Assembly: GCF_030028105.1 (NCBI RefSeq)
Contig: NC_092379.1
Span: 25,041,821-25,105,820 of the forward strand
Reading direction: 5' to 3'
Length of the DNA stretch: 64,000 nucleotides
Source: Mobula birostris
Lineage: Eukaryota
The position numbers were made by a program, and so were the translations under genes. Positions 14,282-37,620 of this stretch are shown here, one piece after another. Each line of letters begins with the position of its first letter. Position 1 is the first letter of the stretch. The notes under the pieces were generated by a model. The model was not told where the DNA came from. It ran no database searches and saw only the letters and a program-made list of their open reading frames with translations.

Positions 14282-14458
14282 NNNNNNNNNNNNNNNNNNN
14301 NNNNNNNNNNNNNNNNNNNNNNNNNNNNNNNNNNNNNNNNNNNNNNNNNNNNNNNNNNNNNNNNNNNNNNNNNNNNNNNNNNNNNNNNNNNNNNNNNNNN
14401 NNNNNNNNNNNNNNNNNNNNNNNNNNNNNNNNNNNNNNNNNNNNNNNNNNNNNNNNNN
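14282..14458. other. Assembly gap (177 N)
   Basis: Run of n. Confidence 1.
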
Positions 14459-28904: not shown

Positions 28905-29810
28905 CTGCAACACACATACAATGCTGCTGGAACGCAGCAGGCTAGATAGCATCTAGAGGAAAACAGTATAGTCGACGCTTCGGGCCGAGACCCATGTCAG
29001 GACTAACTGAAAGAAGAGATAGTGCGAAATTTGAAAGTAGAAGGGGGAGCGGGCGATCCGAAATGATACGAGAGGACAGGAGAGGGGAGGACAGAGGCTA
29101 AGAGCTGGAAAGTTGATTGGCAAAACGGATAGAGAGTTGGAAAAGGGGGAGGATAATGGGACAGGAGGCTTAGGGAGACAGGAAGGGGAAGGCGAGCCAA
29201 GAGGAAGATGGAGAGCAGGCAAGGAGTGAATGTGAGAGGTACAGCAAGAGAAGAAAAAGAAGAGGGTGATATAAATAAATAAGGGATTGGGTAAGAAGGG
29301 GAGGAAGGACATAAAGGGAAGTTCGAGAAATCAATGTTCATATCACCAGTTTGGAATCTACCCAGATGGAATATAAGGTGTTTTTTTTCTCCAACCTGTT
29401 TGTGGCTTCTCCTTGACAGAGCAAAATGGGAATGGGACTTGCAATTAAAATGGGTGGCCAGTGGGAAATTTTGCTTTCTCTGGAGGACAGAACGTAGGTG
29501 TTCAGCGAAACCGTCTCCCAGTCTGCGTAGTGTCTCACCAATACATAGGAGGCAACAGCGGGAGGACCGGACGCAGGGTATCACACCAGCCGGCTCATAG
29601 GTGAAGTGTGGGCTCACCTGGATGGACTGTCTAGGGCCCTGAATGGTAGCTAAGGAGGAAATGTAAGGATAGGTGTATCACCTGTTCTGCTTACAAGTAT
29701 AAGTGCCGGGAGAGAGATCGGTTGGACAGGATGGGGATAACGAATGGACAAGGGAGTCGCAGACGACGCGATTCCTGCGGAAATCAGAAAGAGGGGTGGA
29801 TTTAATCTTG
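28905..29810 (-). mobile_element. Penelope-like element 3' part (GIY-YIG endonuclease remnant + pLTR)
   Basis: ORF 29003-29617 contains CIGETLRRLGDGFAEHLRSV (GIY-YIG YIGET..RL..RF.EH motif); hammerhead-like motif near the 3' end. Confidence 0.85.
28969..29005 (-). ncRNA. Decayed minimal type-I hammerhead ribozyme motif (Penelope pLTR)
   Basis: UAGUC-CUGACAU-GGG UCUCGG CCC-GAAG-CGUC-GACUA: stem I and stem II intact, core mutated (CUGANGA>CUGACAU, GAAA>GAAG). Confidence 0.6.
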
Positions 29811-29814
29811 AGTC

Positions 29815-29974
29815 TAGAGGAGGCCACTCACAATTACTCCTTGCCTGCTTTCGTCCCTCTCACAATCACTCCGTGATTGCTTTCCATTTTCCTCTGGGCT
29901 CTCCTGCCCCTTCCTTCTCATAGGCCGCCTGTCCCATGATCCTCCGCTTTTTCGAACTCTATATCACTTTTGCC
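29815..29974 (+). mobile_element. Penelope-like inverted pLTR fragment, left part (split by RTE insertion)
   Basis: Inverted homology to ~29130-29300; continues at 37354-37620 after the 9-bp TSD acttttgcc. Confidence 0.6.
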
Positions 29975-30119
29975 CTTCTCCGTGGATTGTCACCTTGTCG
30001 CGGTGGAGAGGCTTGTGATGTCCTGAGATCCCGAGAACGATGCCGTCTAGAGCTACGCAACTGGTAGGGTCACCCATGGTGGTATGTTCGAGGGTGAGGT
30101 CCCTGACAAAGAACATTCC
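29975..30119 (+). ncRNA. HDV-like self-cleaving ribozyme candidate at the RTE 5' end
   Basis: P1 CUUCUCC(29975-81)/GGAGAGG(30005-11); P2 GGAUUGU(29984-90)/ACAUUCC(30113-19), one U-U mismatch; P3 ACC/GGU; L3 UUGUCGC; J4/2 C30107-AAAG-A. P1 starts at the first base after the TSD. Confidence 0.68.
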
Positions 30120-32384
30120 AACCAAGACCTCAACGGTGGAACAGGCGGACGATGTTACCTCAAACTCAACAACTGAGAAAGCGAATGAAGGCTGCAACAA
30201 ATCTATCAGCTCCAATCGTGGTGGTTTCATACCATTAGAATCAATTGGTTGATTTGTGAAGAAACGTGTGTTTCTTGAAGTGCAACATCAAGTACACGCT
30301 AAAGAAACAAACACACAGGCGTCTTCGCTCTGTGATCCACTTCAAGTCTTTCAACGATCGGGGAACGGCGACGGGAGCAGGCAATATGATGTCCGGAAGC
30401 TCCTCGTCAAGAACCAGCACGGAAGCGGTGAATACTTGTTTCAATAGCTCAGCTTTTGGACAAAAGCAGGAAAGTTGTTCGGCAGCCGTTTTCACATTTG
30501 AGCAGCCCTTTATTTGGATCCACTCTGCTCACCCTGAGCTATGAAGGGGCTATAAAAGATGCCCTAAAATATTCTGTTTCACCTCATCCTGTATGGAAAG
30601 CCGTGTCCAGAGGGATCACCTTCATGCGGTCAATAATCATCGAGAAGTGAAACTATGAAATTTGGAACCTGGAATATACGAACTCTGATGGATAACCCGA
30701 ACTCAGACCGACCAGAGAGGAGAACTACCTTTGTTGCCCGGGAACACCAAAAAAAAAAATCAACTTTGACATAGTTGCTCTGAGTCAGACCCGCAGAGCT
30801 GGAGAAGGGCAACTAAAGGAAGAGCAAGGTCAACGCAACCTTTTTTTTTTCTGGAAGGACTTGATCCTGAACAATCAAAGATCCATAGAGTAGGTTTTGC
30901 CATCCGAAAGAGCCTACTTCAGAAGCTGACAGAGCAACCACTGGGAATCAACGAGCGTCTCATGGTTCTGCGAATCCAGCTTTTCAAGAACCTACACGCC
31001 AGCATCATCAGCACCTATGCTCCAACTCTGGATGCTGAAGGTGAAGTGAAGATCAACTTTACCAGGTCCTTTCTTCCGTTCCCAACAACGACAAGATGAT
31101 TCTTTTGGGAGACTTCATTGCCAGAGTCCGGAAAATTCATAGCCTCTCTCCGGCTTAATTAGCAAGGAAGGAGTTTGCAAGATTACGCCAATGGAACACT
31201 CCTCCTCACTAAATGTGCTGAACACAAACTGGTGATTACAAAGACCCTATTTCGCCAGAAAAAACAGGCACAAAGTCGCTTGGCAGCATCCACACTCCAA
31301 TTACTGGCACTCCATCAACTACATCATCGTATGATCTCGGGGCCAACAAGATGTACTGATAGCGAGAGCTGTTAGTTGAGCTGACGAGTTGAGCTGACAG
31401 ACCATCGACTCATCTCGTCCACCATGAGAATGAAAATTCGGCCCTAAAGGAAACCGCCAAATCAGAACACTATTAAGATATTTAATGCTGACTTCATTCA
31501 AGGCATCAGCCATGTATAGAAGTTTCAGAACAATCGTCAAGAACAACTACCTCAACAAACCCCACCATATGTAGAAGAAGACTGGAATCATTTGAAGAAT
31601 ACAATCATCAGCTCCTGCAAATAAACAGTTGGGTTCAAGACGAAAAAACAACATGATTGGTTCGATTATAACGACAATTACTCCAACAACTCATCGACGA
31701 TAAGAGAAGAAGTTTCAATACCTTGCAAAATGACCAACAATCAGCTACCAAAAGGAAACACTATCAGGAATGTAAGGCTGCAGTCCAGAAGAGCAGCCGA
31801 ACCTGAAAAAAAAAAACAATGGTGGAGGAATAAATCTCTGGTAATCCAACAACCAACGGAATCCAAACACACTCAAGGCTTTTTCAACGCAACTACAGCT
31901 ATTTTTGGCCATTCCGCTCGTGGTAAAGCCCCTCTCAAAAGCAAAGATGGTTCAATCATCCTGAAGAGCCATGCTGACATTAATTCGAGATGGAGGGATC
32001 ACTTTGAAGATCTTCTAAATCAAACAGTCTCATTTAGCAGGAATGTGATTAACACCATTCCAAGACAGCCCGTTGACAAATCCCGAAGCAAAGTACCAAC
32101 ATTTGAAGAAGTCAATAAAGCCATCAAAACCTCGAAAAACATCAAGGCAACTGGACTCGATGGAATACCAGCCGAGGTCTGCTAAAATTGGAGGTAACCC
32201 GCATCATTATCAACTCCATCAACTTCTCATCAAGATATGGATAAATGAAGAAGTACCAGCAGACTTTAGAGACTCAGCAATCGTTACCATCTACAAAAGG
32301 AAAGACGATCGATCCGAATACAGAAACTATTGTGGAATTTCCCCGTTAGTCACAGCAGGAAATATCCTCACCCGTATCATGAAC

Positions 32385-34607
32385 ACCGGTCTGGTCCTAG
32401 GGTTGAGGTTCTTAACTGGAAGAAGGCCAAATTTGAAGAAATGAGAAAGGATCGAAAAAGCGTGGATGGGGACAGATTGTTCTCTGGCATGGATGTGATC
32501 GGTAGGTGGGAAGCCTTCAAAGCAGAAATTTTGAGAGTGCAGAATTTGTATGTTCCTGTCAGGATTAAAGGCAAGGCCAATGGGAATAAGGAACCTTATT
32601 TTTCAAGGGATATTGCAACTCTGATAAAGAAGAAGAGGGAGTTGTATGACGTGTATAGGAAGCAGGGAGTAAATAAGGTGCTTGAGGAGTATAAGAAGTG
32701 CAAGAAAATACTTAAGAAAGAAATCAGGAGGGCTATAAGAAGACACGAGGTTGCCTTGGCAGTCAAAACGAAGGATAATCCACAGAGCTTTTATAGTTAT
32801 ATTAAGAGCAAAAGGATTGTAAGTGATAAAATTGGTCCTCTTGAAGATCAGAGTGGTCGGCTATGTGCGGAACCAAAGGAAATGGGGGAGATCTTAAATA
32901 GTTTTTTTTTTGCATCTGTTTTTACTAAGGAAACTGGCATGAAGTCTATGGAATTAAGGGAAACAAGTAGTGAGATCATGGAAACTGTACAGATTGAAAA
33001 GGAGGAGGTCGTTGCTGTCTTGAGGAAAATTAAAGTGGATAAATCCCCGGGACCTGACAGGGTGTTCCCTCGGACCTTGAAGGAGACTAGTGTTGAAATT
33101 GCAGGGGCCCTGGCTGAAATATTTAAAATGTCGCTGTCTACAGGTGAGGTGCCGGAGGATTGCAGAGTAGCTCATGTTGTTTCGTTGTTTAAAATAGGAT
33201 CGAAAAGTAATCCGGGAAATTGTAGGGCAGTAAGTTTAATGTCGGTAGTAGGTAAGTTATTGGAGGGAGTACAAAGAGGCAGAATCTGCAAGCATTTCGA
33301 TAGTCCGGGACTTATTAGGGATAGTCAACATGGCTTTGTGCATGGTAGGTCATGTTTGACCAATGTATTAGAGTTTTTCGAGGAGGTTACCAGGAAAGTG
33401 GATGAAGCGAAGACAGTGGATATTGTCTACGTGGACTTCAGTAAGGCCTTTGACAAGGTCCCGCATGGGAGGTTAGTTAGGAAAACTCAGTCGCTAGGTA
33501 TACATGGAGAGGTGGTAAATTGGATTAGACATTGGCTCGATGGAAGAAGCCAGAGAGTGATGATAGAGAATTGATTCTCTGAGTGGAAGCCTGTGACTAG
33601 TGGTGTGCCACAGGGATCAGTGTTGGGTCCGTTGTTATTTGTCATCTATATCAATGATCTGGATGATAATGTGGTAAATTGGATCAGCAAGTTTGCTGAT
33701 GATGCAAAGATTGGAGGTGTAGTAGACAGTGAAGAAGGTTTTCAGAGCCTGCAGAGGGACTTGGACGAGCTGGAAAAATGGGGTAAAAAATGGCAGATGG
33801 AGTTTAATACTGACAAGTGTGAGGTATTGCACGTTGGAAGGACAAACCAACGTAGAACATACAGGGTTAATGGTAAGGCACTGAAGAGTGCAGTGGAACA
33901 GAGAGATCTGGAAATACAGATACAAAATTCCCTAAAAGTGGAGTCACAGGTCGATAGGGTCGTAAAGAGGGCTTTTGGTGCATTTGCCTTTATTAATCAA
34001 AGTATTGAGTATAAGAGCTGGAATGTTATGATGAGGTTGTATAAGGCATTGGTGAGGCCGAATCTGGAGTATTGTGTTCAGTTTTAGTCACCAAATTACA
34101 GGAAGGATATAAATAAGGTTGAAAGAGTGCAGAGAAGGTTTACAAGATGTTGCCGGGACTTGAGAAACTCAGTTACAGAGAAAGGTTGAATAGGTTGGGT
34201 CTTTATTCCCTGGAGCGTAGAAGAATGAGGGGAGATTATAGAGGTATATAAAATTATGGTGGGTATAGATAGAGTGAATGCAAGCAGCCTTTTTCCACTG
34301 AGGCAAGGGGAGAAAAAAAAAAAAACAGAGGACATGGGTTTAGGGTGAGGGGGGGAAGTTTAAAGGGAACATTAGGGGCGGCTTTTTCACACAGAGAGTG
34401 GTGGGAATATGGAATGAGCTGCCAGACGAGGTGGTAAATGCGGGTTCTTTTTTTAACATTTAAGAATAAATTGGACAGATATATGGATCGGAGGTGTACG
34501 GAGGGATATTGTCCGTGTGCAGGTCAGTGGGACGAGGCAGAGAATGGTTCGGCACAGCCAAAAAGGGCCAAAAGGGCTGTTTCTGTGCTGTAGTTTCTAT
34601 GGTTTCT
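32385..34607 (+). mobile_element. Young 5'-truncated CR1 LINE inserted in the RTE
   Basis: ORFs 32330-33574 and 33593-34087 are in the same frame, separated by one TGA (TGC in the sister copy); SGVPQGSVLGPLLF, FADD; gtttctat tail. Confidence 0.93.
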
Positions 34608-35771
34608 AATCGGCTCAAACTTCTAGCTGAGAAGATCGTTCCGGAGACACAAGCCGGTTTTAGACCATCACGTGGAGCAATCGCCATGATCTTCACAGTG
34701 CGATAACTACAAGAAAAATGTCGTGAACAATTTCAACCTTTGTACATGGCATTCATCGACCTCACGAAAGCATTTGACTCTTTATCAAGGGACCTCCTAT
34801 GGGATGTCCTATCCATCTATCAGTGCCCTGAAAAGTACATTCGAATCCAGAGACTCCTCCACGATAGCATGCCTACCACAGTCATGGTCAGCAACAGTAA
34901 CTGTGAGACTTTTCAAGTTAAATCAGGAGTAAAACAGGGATGCGTGATTGTTTCAACTTTGTTCACCATCTTCATTACGACAATCATCCTCATTATCAAG
35001 GAAGACCTACCCCCAGTAATCGAAATTGTCTACAGAACAGATGGCAGACTTTTCAATCTTGCCCCTCTCAAGTCCAAAACGAAGGCATTCATGGGTTTCC
35101 TCATCGAGTTCCAATACGCACATGACAACAGTGTTGCAGCTCTTTCGGAAAACTACCTACAACAGATTCTGACTACCTTCAAACGTGCATACACGAAACT
35201 TGGATTTACCATCAATTCTTGAAGACTCAGACCATCTATCAACCGTCACCAATTGAGATAAATCTGATAGAACCATCCATTCAATTTGGCGAAACCACCC
35301 TGGAAAACGTGGACCACCTTCCGTATCTTTGAAGTCACCTCTCCTCCAATGTCGACCTCAATGACGAGAATCATCATCGGCTTAAGTGCGCTGGAACAGC
35401 TTCTGGACGTCTCCGAACAAGAGTCTTTCACGATCGTGACATCCGAACAGACACCAACATGTTAGTGTACAAAGCAGTGGTAATCCCAACGCTCCTGTAT
35501 GCATCAGAAACTTGGACAGCATACCGATGACATCTGAAGGCACTTGAAATGGACAATCAATGTTGTCTTCGAAACATCTCAAATATCAGCTGGGAGGATA
35601 GAAGAACCAACGTCAGTGTGCTAAATGAAGCAAAAACAAGAGACATTGAAACCTACGTCATCAAGAACCAACTAAGGTGGAGCGGTCATGTTGTTCGGAT
35701 GAAAGACGAAGGTATTCCGAAATAATTCTTCTACTCCCATATTAAAGAAGGAAAACTTAAGAGAGGCAGAC

Positions 35772-37028
35772 TGTCATGGTCCGGTCCGCGAAGTCCACAT
35801 TCCAGTTCACGGTCCGGTCCTTGGACTCAGGACTCCGGGACTTCCAGCTGTGCTATGTTTTGATTAAGTTAAGCATAGACACCTGATTCCCAAATTTGGG
35901 GCCTGGAATATAACTAGCCTTGGAGTTGAGTGTGGGCTGCTGGTTTGTCTTGTCAGTTCCCCTTGGAGCAACCTGCTGATGGAAGGCTAGTGAAACCATT
36001 CGTGATCTCTAGACCTGGTGGGAGGAACAGGGCTTCATGGAGCCTTATTCCCACATGTCGGAACAGTTATCGTGGTATGGATGTGGCTACTTCTGTAACT
36101 AGCAACGGTGGCTGGCTGCACCGAGACTCAGAGCCAACCCGGATTGAGCTCCTTTCCTGTCCCTGCCTCCGTTGGATAAGCCAGGCCGTAATTGCCGTTA
36201 CCCTGCGGTTAGCTTTGTCCTTTCCTGTCCCTTATCTCCGACAGATAAGCAGGCCGTTTGCCGTTACCCTGCGGTTGTGACGGTCCCTCCCTGTCCTTAC
36301 CTCCGTGAGGTGAAGTTCCTGTCCAGGAGTTCCGCGTCCTGCCTGGGTGATCCGCATCCTGCCCAGGAGAAGCTCCAAGTACCCAAGCCTCGAGGATCTC
36401 AAGCCAAGCTCCTAGAACCCAAGCTTCCAGGTTTCCAAGCCAAGCTACAAGTACCCAAGCCAGGAGGATCCCAAGCCAAGCTCCAAGAACCCAAGCCTCG
36501 ATGATCCCATCCAAGCTCCAAGAACACTAGCCTCGAGGATACCAAGCCAAGCTCCAAGAACACTAGCCTCGAATATCCCAACCCAGGATCCAAAAACCCA
36601 AACCTGAAGTCCCCAGCTTCCAAGCTCAAGACCCAAGGCACCAGCGCTGCAGCCAAGCTCAAGACCCAACGCCCCAGCCTGCAGCCAAGCTCAAGACCCA
36701 AAACCCCAGCCCCTCTCCAAGCTCAGGCGTCTAGACCCCAGCCACTTCCTATTCTGAAGCCATGTCATGTCCTTGTCTAATTTTGGGGTCCAAGCCCTAG
36801 GCAAGACCAAGTTCTGGGTACTTGTCCAGTCTCGGGCTCGGAGTCGAAGCCTTGTCCCCCAGTACATGGTTTCTTGTCTTGGTCCCGCATTCCCTAGCCC
36901 AGGTCTGCGTTCCTGTCCTTGCTCTTTGCCTTTATCCTGTCACGTCCCTACTCTTGTAAAGTCCTGTTCCTTGTACGTCAGCGTCTGCGTCTCGCATTTG
37001 GGTCCGTTTCCAGCACCCCATTGTGACA
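35772..37028 (+). mobile_element. Solo LTR, family copy 2 (inserted in RTE ORF)
   Basis: TGTCATGG...TTGTGACA; flanks cagac/cggac; removing it restores RTE aagagagg-cggac-aacagaagagattcaaagac. Confidence 0.88.
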
Positions 37029-37353
37029 CGGACAACAGAAGAGATTCAAAGACGTCTTAAAAAACAACATGAAGGAATTTAATATCGACATAACAATTGG
37101 GAAACAAATGCAAGCCATCATCCGAGAAGGAACAGCAACTTTCGTGGTCAACAAATGTGCAGAATTAGAAGAAAAGAGAAGAAAATTGAAAGATACGTAA
37201 CAACAACCAATGACCGATCTGTCACCTGGAACTGTTCTGAATGCGGAAGATCGTTCAAGGCCAAGACTGGATTCATAAGCCACTTGAGAGCCCATAAGTA
37301 GATCACAGAACGAAGACCATCATCCTCGACCTCGACCGATAGCTACGGCGATT

Positions 37354-37620
37354 ACTTTTGCCAATCAATATTCCAGCTCTTTGCTTCTTACCTCCTCCTC
37401 TTGTATTCTATGATTTCGGATCTCCCTCTCACCCACTCACTTTCAAATGTCTTACTGTATTTTCTTTCAGTTAGTCCTGACGAAGGGTCTCGGTCTTAAA
37501 CGTCGTTTGTACTTATTCCTATAGATGCTGCCTGTCCTGCTGCGTTCCGCCGGCATATTGCTTGTGTCGCTTGAATTTCCAGCATTTTCAGATGTTCTCG
37601 TATTTGCGTTAAACTGCTGC
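37354..37620 (+). mobile_element. Penelope-like pLTR fragment, right part
   Basis: Inverted homology to 28905-29130 (…cagttagtcctgacgaagggtctcgg…atagatgctgcctgtcctgctgcgttcc…). Confidence 0.7.
37472..37509 (+). ncRNA. Decayed minimal type-I hammerhead ribozyme motif
   Basis: UAGUC-CUGACGA-A-GGG UCUCGG UCU-UAAA-CGUC-GUUUG: CUGANGA intact, GAAA>UAAA, stems partly eroded. Confidence 0.55.

Follow-up and report, generated by a model that had tools for sequence, protein, structure and literature searches.

We found that an abundant family of LINEs in rays probably carries a genuine HDV-like ribozyme at its head, and that the copy in the window analysed here, a stretch of 64,000 nucleotides of Mobula birostris DNA, is a decayed relic of it. 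The fold occupies the first 145–146 bases of the LINE (29975–30120, + strand), and this reading, which is drawn from sequence comparison, is supported by the match to a structural descriptor, by the junction at which the copies of the family begin and by a table of base pairs compared with relatives.

The strands follow each other in the order P1, P2, P3, L3, P3', P1', J1/4, P4, J4/2 and P2', which corresponds to a nested double pseudoknot. All of them could be placed on the + strand, as an earlier note on this DNA had claimed for 29966–30119. P1 (CUUCUCC at 29975–29981 with GGAGAGG at 30005–30011) has 7 bp, six of them Watson–Crick pairs and the other U29976–G30010. The 5' strand of P2, GGAUUGU followed by C29991 (29984–29991), pairs at six of seven positions with 30113–30119, U29987–U30116 being the sole mismatch in the window copy. 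P3 (ACC at 29992–29994 with GGU at 30002–30004) consists of three Watson–Crick pairs, and its 3' strand abuts directly on that of P1 (together 30002–30011). The loop L3 (29995–30001) reads UUGUCGC in the window copy and shows U29995, C29999 and G30000 at the expected positions. In known ribozymes the conserved U and G of L3 form a reverse wobble, in which the G is important (PMC3774820); in the ray element U29995 and G30000 occupy these positions. P1, P2, P3 and L3 are present as the earlier note had drawn them, and its P1.1 was likewise recovered as the single pair G29997–C30012, with U29996 and U30013 opposite each other and unpaired; C30012 and U30013 make up J1/4 (30012–30013). A P4 domain of 93 bases follows (30014–30106).

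For J4/2 the earlier note had proposed CAAAG with C30107 as the candidate catalytic base. C30107 does open the junction, but comparison with the relatives described below suggests a tidier J4/2 of only CAAA (30107–30110), in keeping with the canonical C-N-R-A, an unpaired C followed by purines. G30111 would then pair with C29991, A30112 would be bulged, and P2 would run directly into P3; the 3' strand of P2 (30111–30119) accordingly comprises G30111, A30112 and ACAUUCC. A C stands at the position of C30107 relative to P2' in the rays and in the relatives L001 and L007. The first base, which had been noted as atypical, indeed is: the G–U wobble of the cleavage site is replaced by C29975–G30011, and the same C–G pair is present in all relatives. 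Such a wobble is not universal, since the active L1Tc ribozyme has C1 (PMC3185411).

The descriptor asks for a P1 of 7 bp, a P3 of three Watson–Crick pairs abutting P1', an L3 of the form U-N-N-N-C-G-N, one P1.1 pair, C-N-R-A and a P2 with at least six of seven pairs, all features taken from published ribozymes. On both strands of the 64 kb it matches a single locus, which starts at 29975. Covariance models of Rfam are unable to score pseudoknots. Rfam returned no ribozyme family at the LINE head, neither with the whole window at the gathering threshold nor with 29800–30400 at E values up to 10. A second, compact closure with C30031 and P2' at 30037–30043 also passes the descriptor with six of seven pairs. 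We rejected it: a subfamily change at 30038–30041 breaks it and keeps a hairpin at 30035–30060, and a match of this type within 130 bases has an estimated chance of roughly one in three.

Independently of how the descriptor was designed, the match falls on one base that is set by the target-site duplication (TSD). The 9-base sequence ACTTTTGCC occurs as an exact match at 29966–29974 and at 37354–37362 (both + strand) and has no third occurrence in the window; the right copy lies 52 bases past the stop codon of the last reading frame of the element. The pair bounds a LINE of 7.4 kb on the + strand (29975–37353). The TSD ends at 29974 and P1 begins at 29975, in full agreement with what the earlier note had reported. 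Elements of the R2, R4, L1 and RTE clades have been reported to be cut by their ribozymes exactly at the 5' junction (PMC3774820; PMC6765202). By analogy with the tested ribozymes of other LINEs, we picture a ray LINE that would have no need of an exact promoter of its own. Its transcript would be read through from upstream DNA, and the head would fold into the nested double pseudoknot of P1, P2, P3, the one-pair P1.1 and the P4 domain. C30107 in J4/2 would act as the general acid, the chain being cut immediately 5' of C29975. Reverse transcription up to the cut end would finally yield new copies that begin at the same base, each beside its own TSD.

The beginning of the family could be read from other copies. 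The stretch 29500–30700 is present in DNA runs from four organisms, the source species among them; none of the runs is recorded as RNA, and three small ones that we guessed to be RNA contain next to none of its words. We mapped the contigs of four ray runs on 29800–30399 at 80% likeness and regarded none of them as human; all runs are stored as contigs, and the ends therefore are those of DNA copies and not of RNA. By far the commonest loose end is 29975, with 182, 23, 175 and 154 contigs in the four runs. The letters upstream of these breaks agree at only 0.33–0.38, as unrelated flanks do. In run X13, 37 further contigs end at 29974, about the expectation for one base that matches by chance. 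The junctions place the family start at C29975 and G29972 within the target site, so that the alternative +1 at G29972, which the earlier note had kept in reserve, falls away; the relatives also begin with a C that is paired to G. The 5' ends of other copies, which the note had proposed to map, hence coincide with the start of P1. End of the TSD (29974), contig junctions (29975) and first base of P1 (29975) all point to the same cut site, indirectly, being read from DNA copies. Several ray species carry this LINE family in abundance.

In each run, about 48 contigs form a second class with its break at 29984, and their clipped letters end in CUUCUCUGA. This is a subfamily variant of 29975–29983, in which P1 pair 7 would be U–G if G30005 is unchanged there. 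Contig depth, a crude measure, is highest over 29980–30019 and 30100–30139 and falls off over 30020–30059. Many family contigs (65, 9, 76 and 54 in the four runs) diverge right after 30154 into a common different sequence; they are probably short deletion elements made of head plus tail, or a subfamily.

Next, the letters carried by the majority of copies were taken position by position over the 145-base non-coding head, and not as an element-wide consensus. They differ from the window copy at 12 of the 145 ribozyme positions. Three of these lie in the core, and two of the three improve the fold. The change 30010 G>A (68–87% of depth) turns the U–G pair of P1 into U–A, and 30116 T>A (97% of depth in X5 and more than 99% in each of the other three runs) repairs the sole P2 mismatch as U–A; the third, 30001 C>T (77–97% of depth), makes L3 UUGUCGU. 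The fold is also better with the majority letters at 30080 and 30087. The candidate catalytic C, the G and U of L3 and the helices are all retained in the majority of copies. The window copy itself, with its P2 mismatch, the U–G pair in P1, broken P4 hairpins and a disrupted reading frame, is a decayed relic.

With majority letters the 93 bases of P4 fold into three hairpins, at 30019–30030, 30031/35–30060/64 and 30065–30105. The long P4 region that the earlier note had left unparsed is therefore present, but as several hairpins and not as a single stem; we discarded one long stem on the basis of this fold. The last hairpin, which adjoins the catalytic-position C, is on folding the best candidate for P4 proper. 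The middle hairpin is supported by a subfamily consensus from three runs, with loose ends at 30061, which retains a 9-bp stem at 30035–30060; the pair 30039:30056 is U–A in this subfamily, G–U in the majority and G–C in the window copy. The folding energy of P4 is not better than that of shuffles (z = −0.55 with majority letters, +1.14 for the window copy), and the P4 of the window copy folds worse than that of the majority. No clear closing stem for the region was found in the majority-letter fold. This weighs little against the reading, since active R2 ribozymes vary in P4 or lack it (PMC3774820).

The exact 20-base core pattern, covering P3, L3 and part of P1', was scanned in metagenome contigs and gave seven loci. 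Three of these (L001, L002 and L005) represent a single locus, from an AT-rich eukaryote; L007 and L004 come from eukaryotes as well, each a locus of its own, and L003 and L006 are GC-rich chance matches that fail the descriptor. A longer pattern of 28 bases had no match in the metagenomes, and the 20-base pattern had none in viral contigs. In genome contigs it had three bacterial matches, which we rejected: about two are expected by chance and the descriptor failed on them. L001 (with L002 and L005) and L007 satisfy the same descriptor as the ray head. Because the search demanded the 20 pattern bases, identity of the relatives over P3, L3 and that part of P1' is uninformative. The 5' strand of P1, P2, the junction before P2' and the length of P4 lie outside the pattern and therefore count as independent evidence. 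We tabulated the pairs by script because a MAFFT alignment displaces P1 by one column.

The 5' strand of P1 reads CCUCUCC in the relatives, and pair 2 is C–G in L001, L007 and L004 versus U–A or U–G in the rays. P2 is formed by GGGGUGU/ACACCCC in L001, by GUGUCU/GGACAC in L007 and by GGAUUGU/ACAAUCC in the rays; its pairs p2, p4 and p5 are altered on both sides among the three. Compensatory changes are thus seen for one P1 pair and three P2 pairs, in a comparison of only three intact lineages, and the covariation for which the earlier note had asked is there. The junction before P2' is CCAAGA in L001 and in L007 and CAAAGA in the rays, a conserved C-N-A-A-G-A, while P4 measures 93 bases in the rays, 56 in L001 and 18 in L007. 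In L001 an A stands opposite in J1/4 and gives P1.1 a second pair, U–A. All relatives have C at +1, paired with G.

L007 (4420–4490, − strand) is a compact 71-base core; its contig, from an ENA metagenome, belongs to an AT-rich eukaryote and has no reading frame downstream of the core. Rfam RF02682 matches L007 weakly over the full length (13.2 bits, E = 4.9), at exactly the borders that we had parsed. L001 (867–975, + strand), with a regular 13-bp P4 and the two-pair P1.1, lies directly 3' of an (ACAAAC)n microsatellite and likewise has no LINE frame downstream. The locus L004 (2218–2385, + strand) is decayed, with U in place of the catalytic-position C and two mismatches in P2. It has parts of the ray P4 domain in common, and some 470 bases downstream of its core (to 2860) a broken start of a LINE endonuclease can be recognized by eye, in the same layout as in the ray element; the source of L004 may be a vertebrate present in that metagenome sample. 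A search for TSDs around L001, L007 and L004 gave nothing convincing.

How else might the fixed start be explained? The base 29975 might be the transcription start of an internal promoter in the 5' UTR, and the HDV-like drawing a conserved structure that does not cut, or a coincidence. A precise promoter would likewise give a fixed 5' end throughout the family, and the first 77 bases of L1Tc serve as promoter and ribozyme together (PMC3185411). This explanation leaves unaccounted for, however, the compensatory changes in the long-range P2 pseudoknot across a P4 of 18–93 bases, the conserved C-N-A-A before P2', the U...C-G signature of L3 and the rarity of the motif. We hold it to be unlikely.

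A little harder still to uphold is that the fold descends from a ribozyme and now does another job, such as binding of the element's own protein or uncapped translation start, with cleavage weak or lost in rays. Protein binding in the 5' UTR and IRES-like roles have been proposed for the R2 and L1Tc ribozymes (PMC6765202); the ray P4 is large and partly conserved (hairpin 30035–30060), and neither the C–G at +1 nor the one-pair P1.1 is as strong as its canonical counterpart. Most copies nevertheless retain the catalytic-position C, the G and U of L3 and the helices, cutting is the simplest explanation for a family that starts exactly at the first base of P1, and additional roles are compatible with cleavage.

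A mere chance resemblance in a GC-balanced 5' UTR is hardly credible: although the descriptor was drawn up after the candidate was known and Rfam is silent, 200 dinucleotide shuffles gave a mean of 0.025 loci per window, a figure which for that very reason is somewhat optimistic and states the evidence at its strongest, yet the match sits on the base set by the TSD and some 500 contig junctions, and the relatives covary.

With the ribozyme as the preferred reading, one may speculate further that the ray element, the L004 LINE and the L001 and L007 loci belong to one old lineage of LINE ribozymes, to which the rays added the branched 93-base P4 with its own conserved hairpins, serving not catalysis but a second function, for example translation start or binding of an element protein. 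We regard this as a tentative idea, less likely than not. The marks of such a lineage may be the near-invariant P3-L3-P3'-P1' core, C at +1, the flipped one-pair P1.1 and C-N-A-A-G-A.

Among known systems, L1Tc of Trypanosoma cruzi comes close, since it also has an HDV-like ribozyme at the head of a TSD-flanked LINE; its tested ribozyme has C at +1 paired with G, a G–C-rich P1 and a single-pair P1.1 (PMC3185411). In contrast to the ray head it is compact with 77 bases, belongs to another LINE clade and host kingdom, and shows no sequence relationship. The ribozymes of RTE elements (Ruminski 2011, J Biol Chem, as cited in PMC6765202 and PMC3774820) resemble the ray head in forming the first bases of the element, in a cut site that is the 5' junction and in having no obvious promoter of their own. 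They differ in that the ray host is an elasmobranch and the ray P4 is branched with 93 bases, a comparison made by description and not by sequence. R2 ribozymes share a P1 of 6–7 bp, a P2 of at least 5 bp, a variable P4, a J1/4 of 0–2 bases and few invariant bases beyond the catalytic C and the G and U of L3. R2, unlike the ray LINE, inserts at a specific site of 28S rDNA; its ribozymes often cut upstream, inside 28S, and their J1/2 loops are large (PMC3774820). In the ray element J1/2 has 1–2 bases and insertion is dispersed.

The ribozyme at the head would explain why an abundant ray LINE family begins at one base, and it would extend the host range of ribozyme-headed LINEs to cartilaginous fishes. 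The mammalian CPEB3 ribozyme has an L3 of the type U-U-N-N-C-G-U and a weak P1.1 with a U–U opposition, as does the ray head. CPEB3 is, however, single-copy and intronic, with G–U at the cut site, a short P4 and a C–G pair in P1.1 where the ray element has the flipped G–C. A literature search, whose scope excluded the key 2011 RTE paper, found no ribozyme-headed LINEs in cartilaginous fishes, and a search with the core sequence returned primers only. The principle of ribozyme-headed LINEs is already established and the gain is incremental. The natural variants (C–G at the cut site, a flipped single P1.1 pair, a P4 of 18–93 bases) nonetheless provide material for finding out what the HDV fold can do without, and the 71-base version of L007 would be a handy minimal construct.

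Finally, the body of the element is that of an old, dead LINE with endonuclease and reverse transcriptase, interrupted by a nested LINE, stop codons and frameshifts. No second copy of its 5' end is present in the 64-kb window, in which a run of N at 14282–14458 was left as is. The LINE frame starts with MKFGTWNIRTL and enters the endonuclease region (30655–31372, + strand), which carries stops and frameshifts. Pfam found no domain in the endonuclease pieces; a word search with them gave four proteins, one of them with PF03372, and the piece 30770–31096 matches this protein (P0004) with E = 6e-9. The outer reverse transcriptase follows at 34707–35219 (+ strand; PF00078, E = 1.1e-11), and a C-terminal C2H2 zinc finger with the stop codon at 37230–37298 (+ strand; zf-C2H2, E = 1.1e-4, under the Pfam cut-off). 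The 3' UTR of 52 bases is without poly(A). RTE elements are marked by one frame that codes for an AP-type endonuclease at its N terminus and for reverse transcriptase, by a short 3' UTR and by the lack of poly(A). The frame start at 30655 with endonuclease-like sequence, PF00078 and the short 3' UTR bear on this assignment, but the outer LINE measures about 5.1 kb once the nested insert is subtracted and ends in a C2H2 finger; with this size and finger RTE is only a candidate clade for it.

The nested LINE is 5'-truncated and lies inside the outer reverse transcriptase region (32385–34609, + strand, borders approximate), with RVT_1 in two pieces at 32330–33574 and 33593–34087. It belongs to another family and has the same orientation; the outer frame picks up again at 34610. 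Tandem repeats with periods of 66, 36 and 32 fill 36156–36725, between the outer reverse transcriptase and the zinc finger; they may be an array internal to the element or have been inserted later. The left flank of the LINE (29900–29974) is an 82% match to an inverted stretch at 29119–29195, 700 bases upstream, and contig depth is raised over it, from which we conclude that the LINE landed in another repeat.
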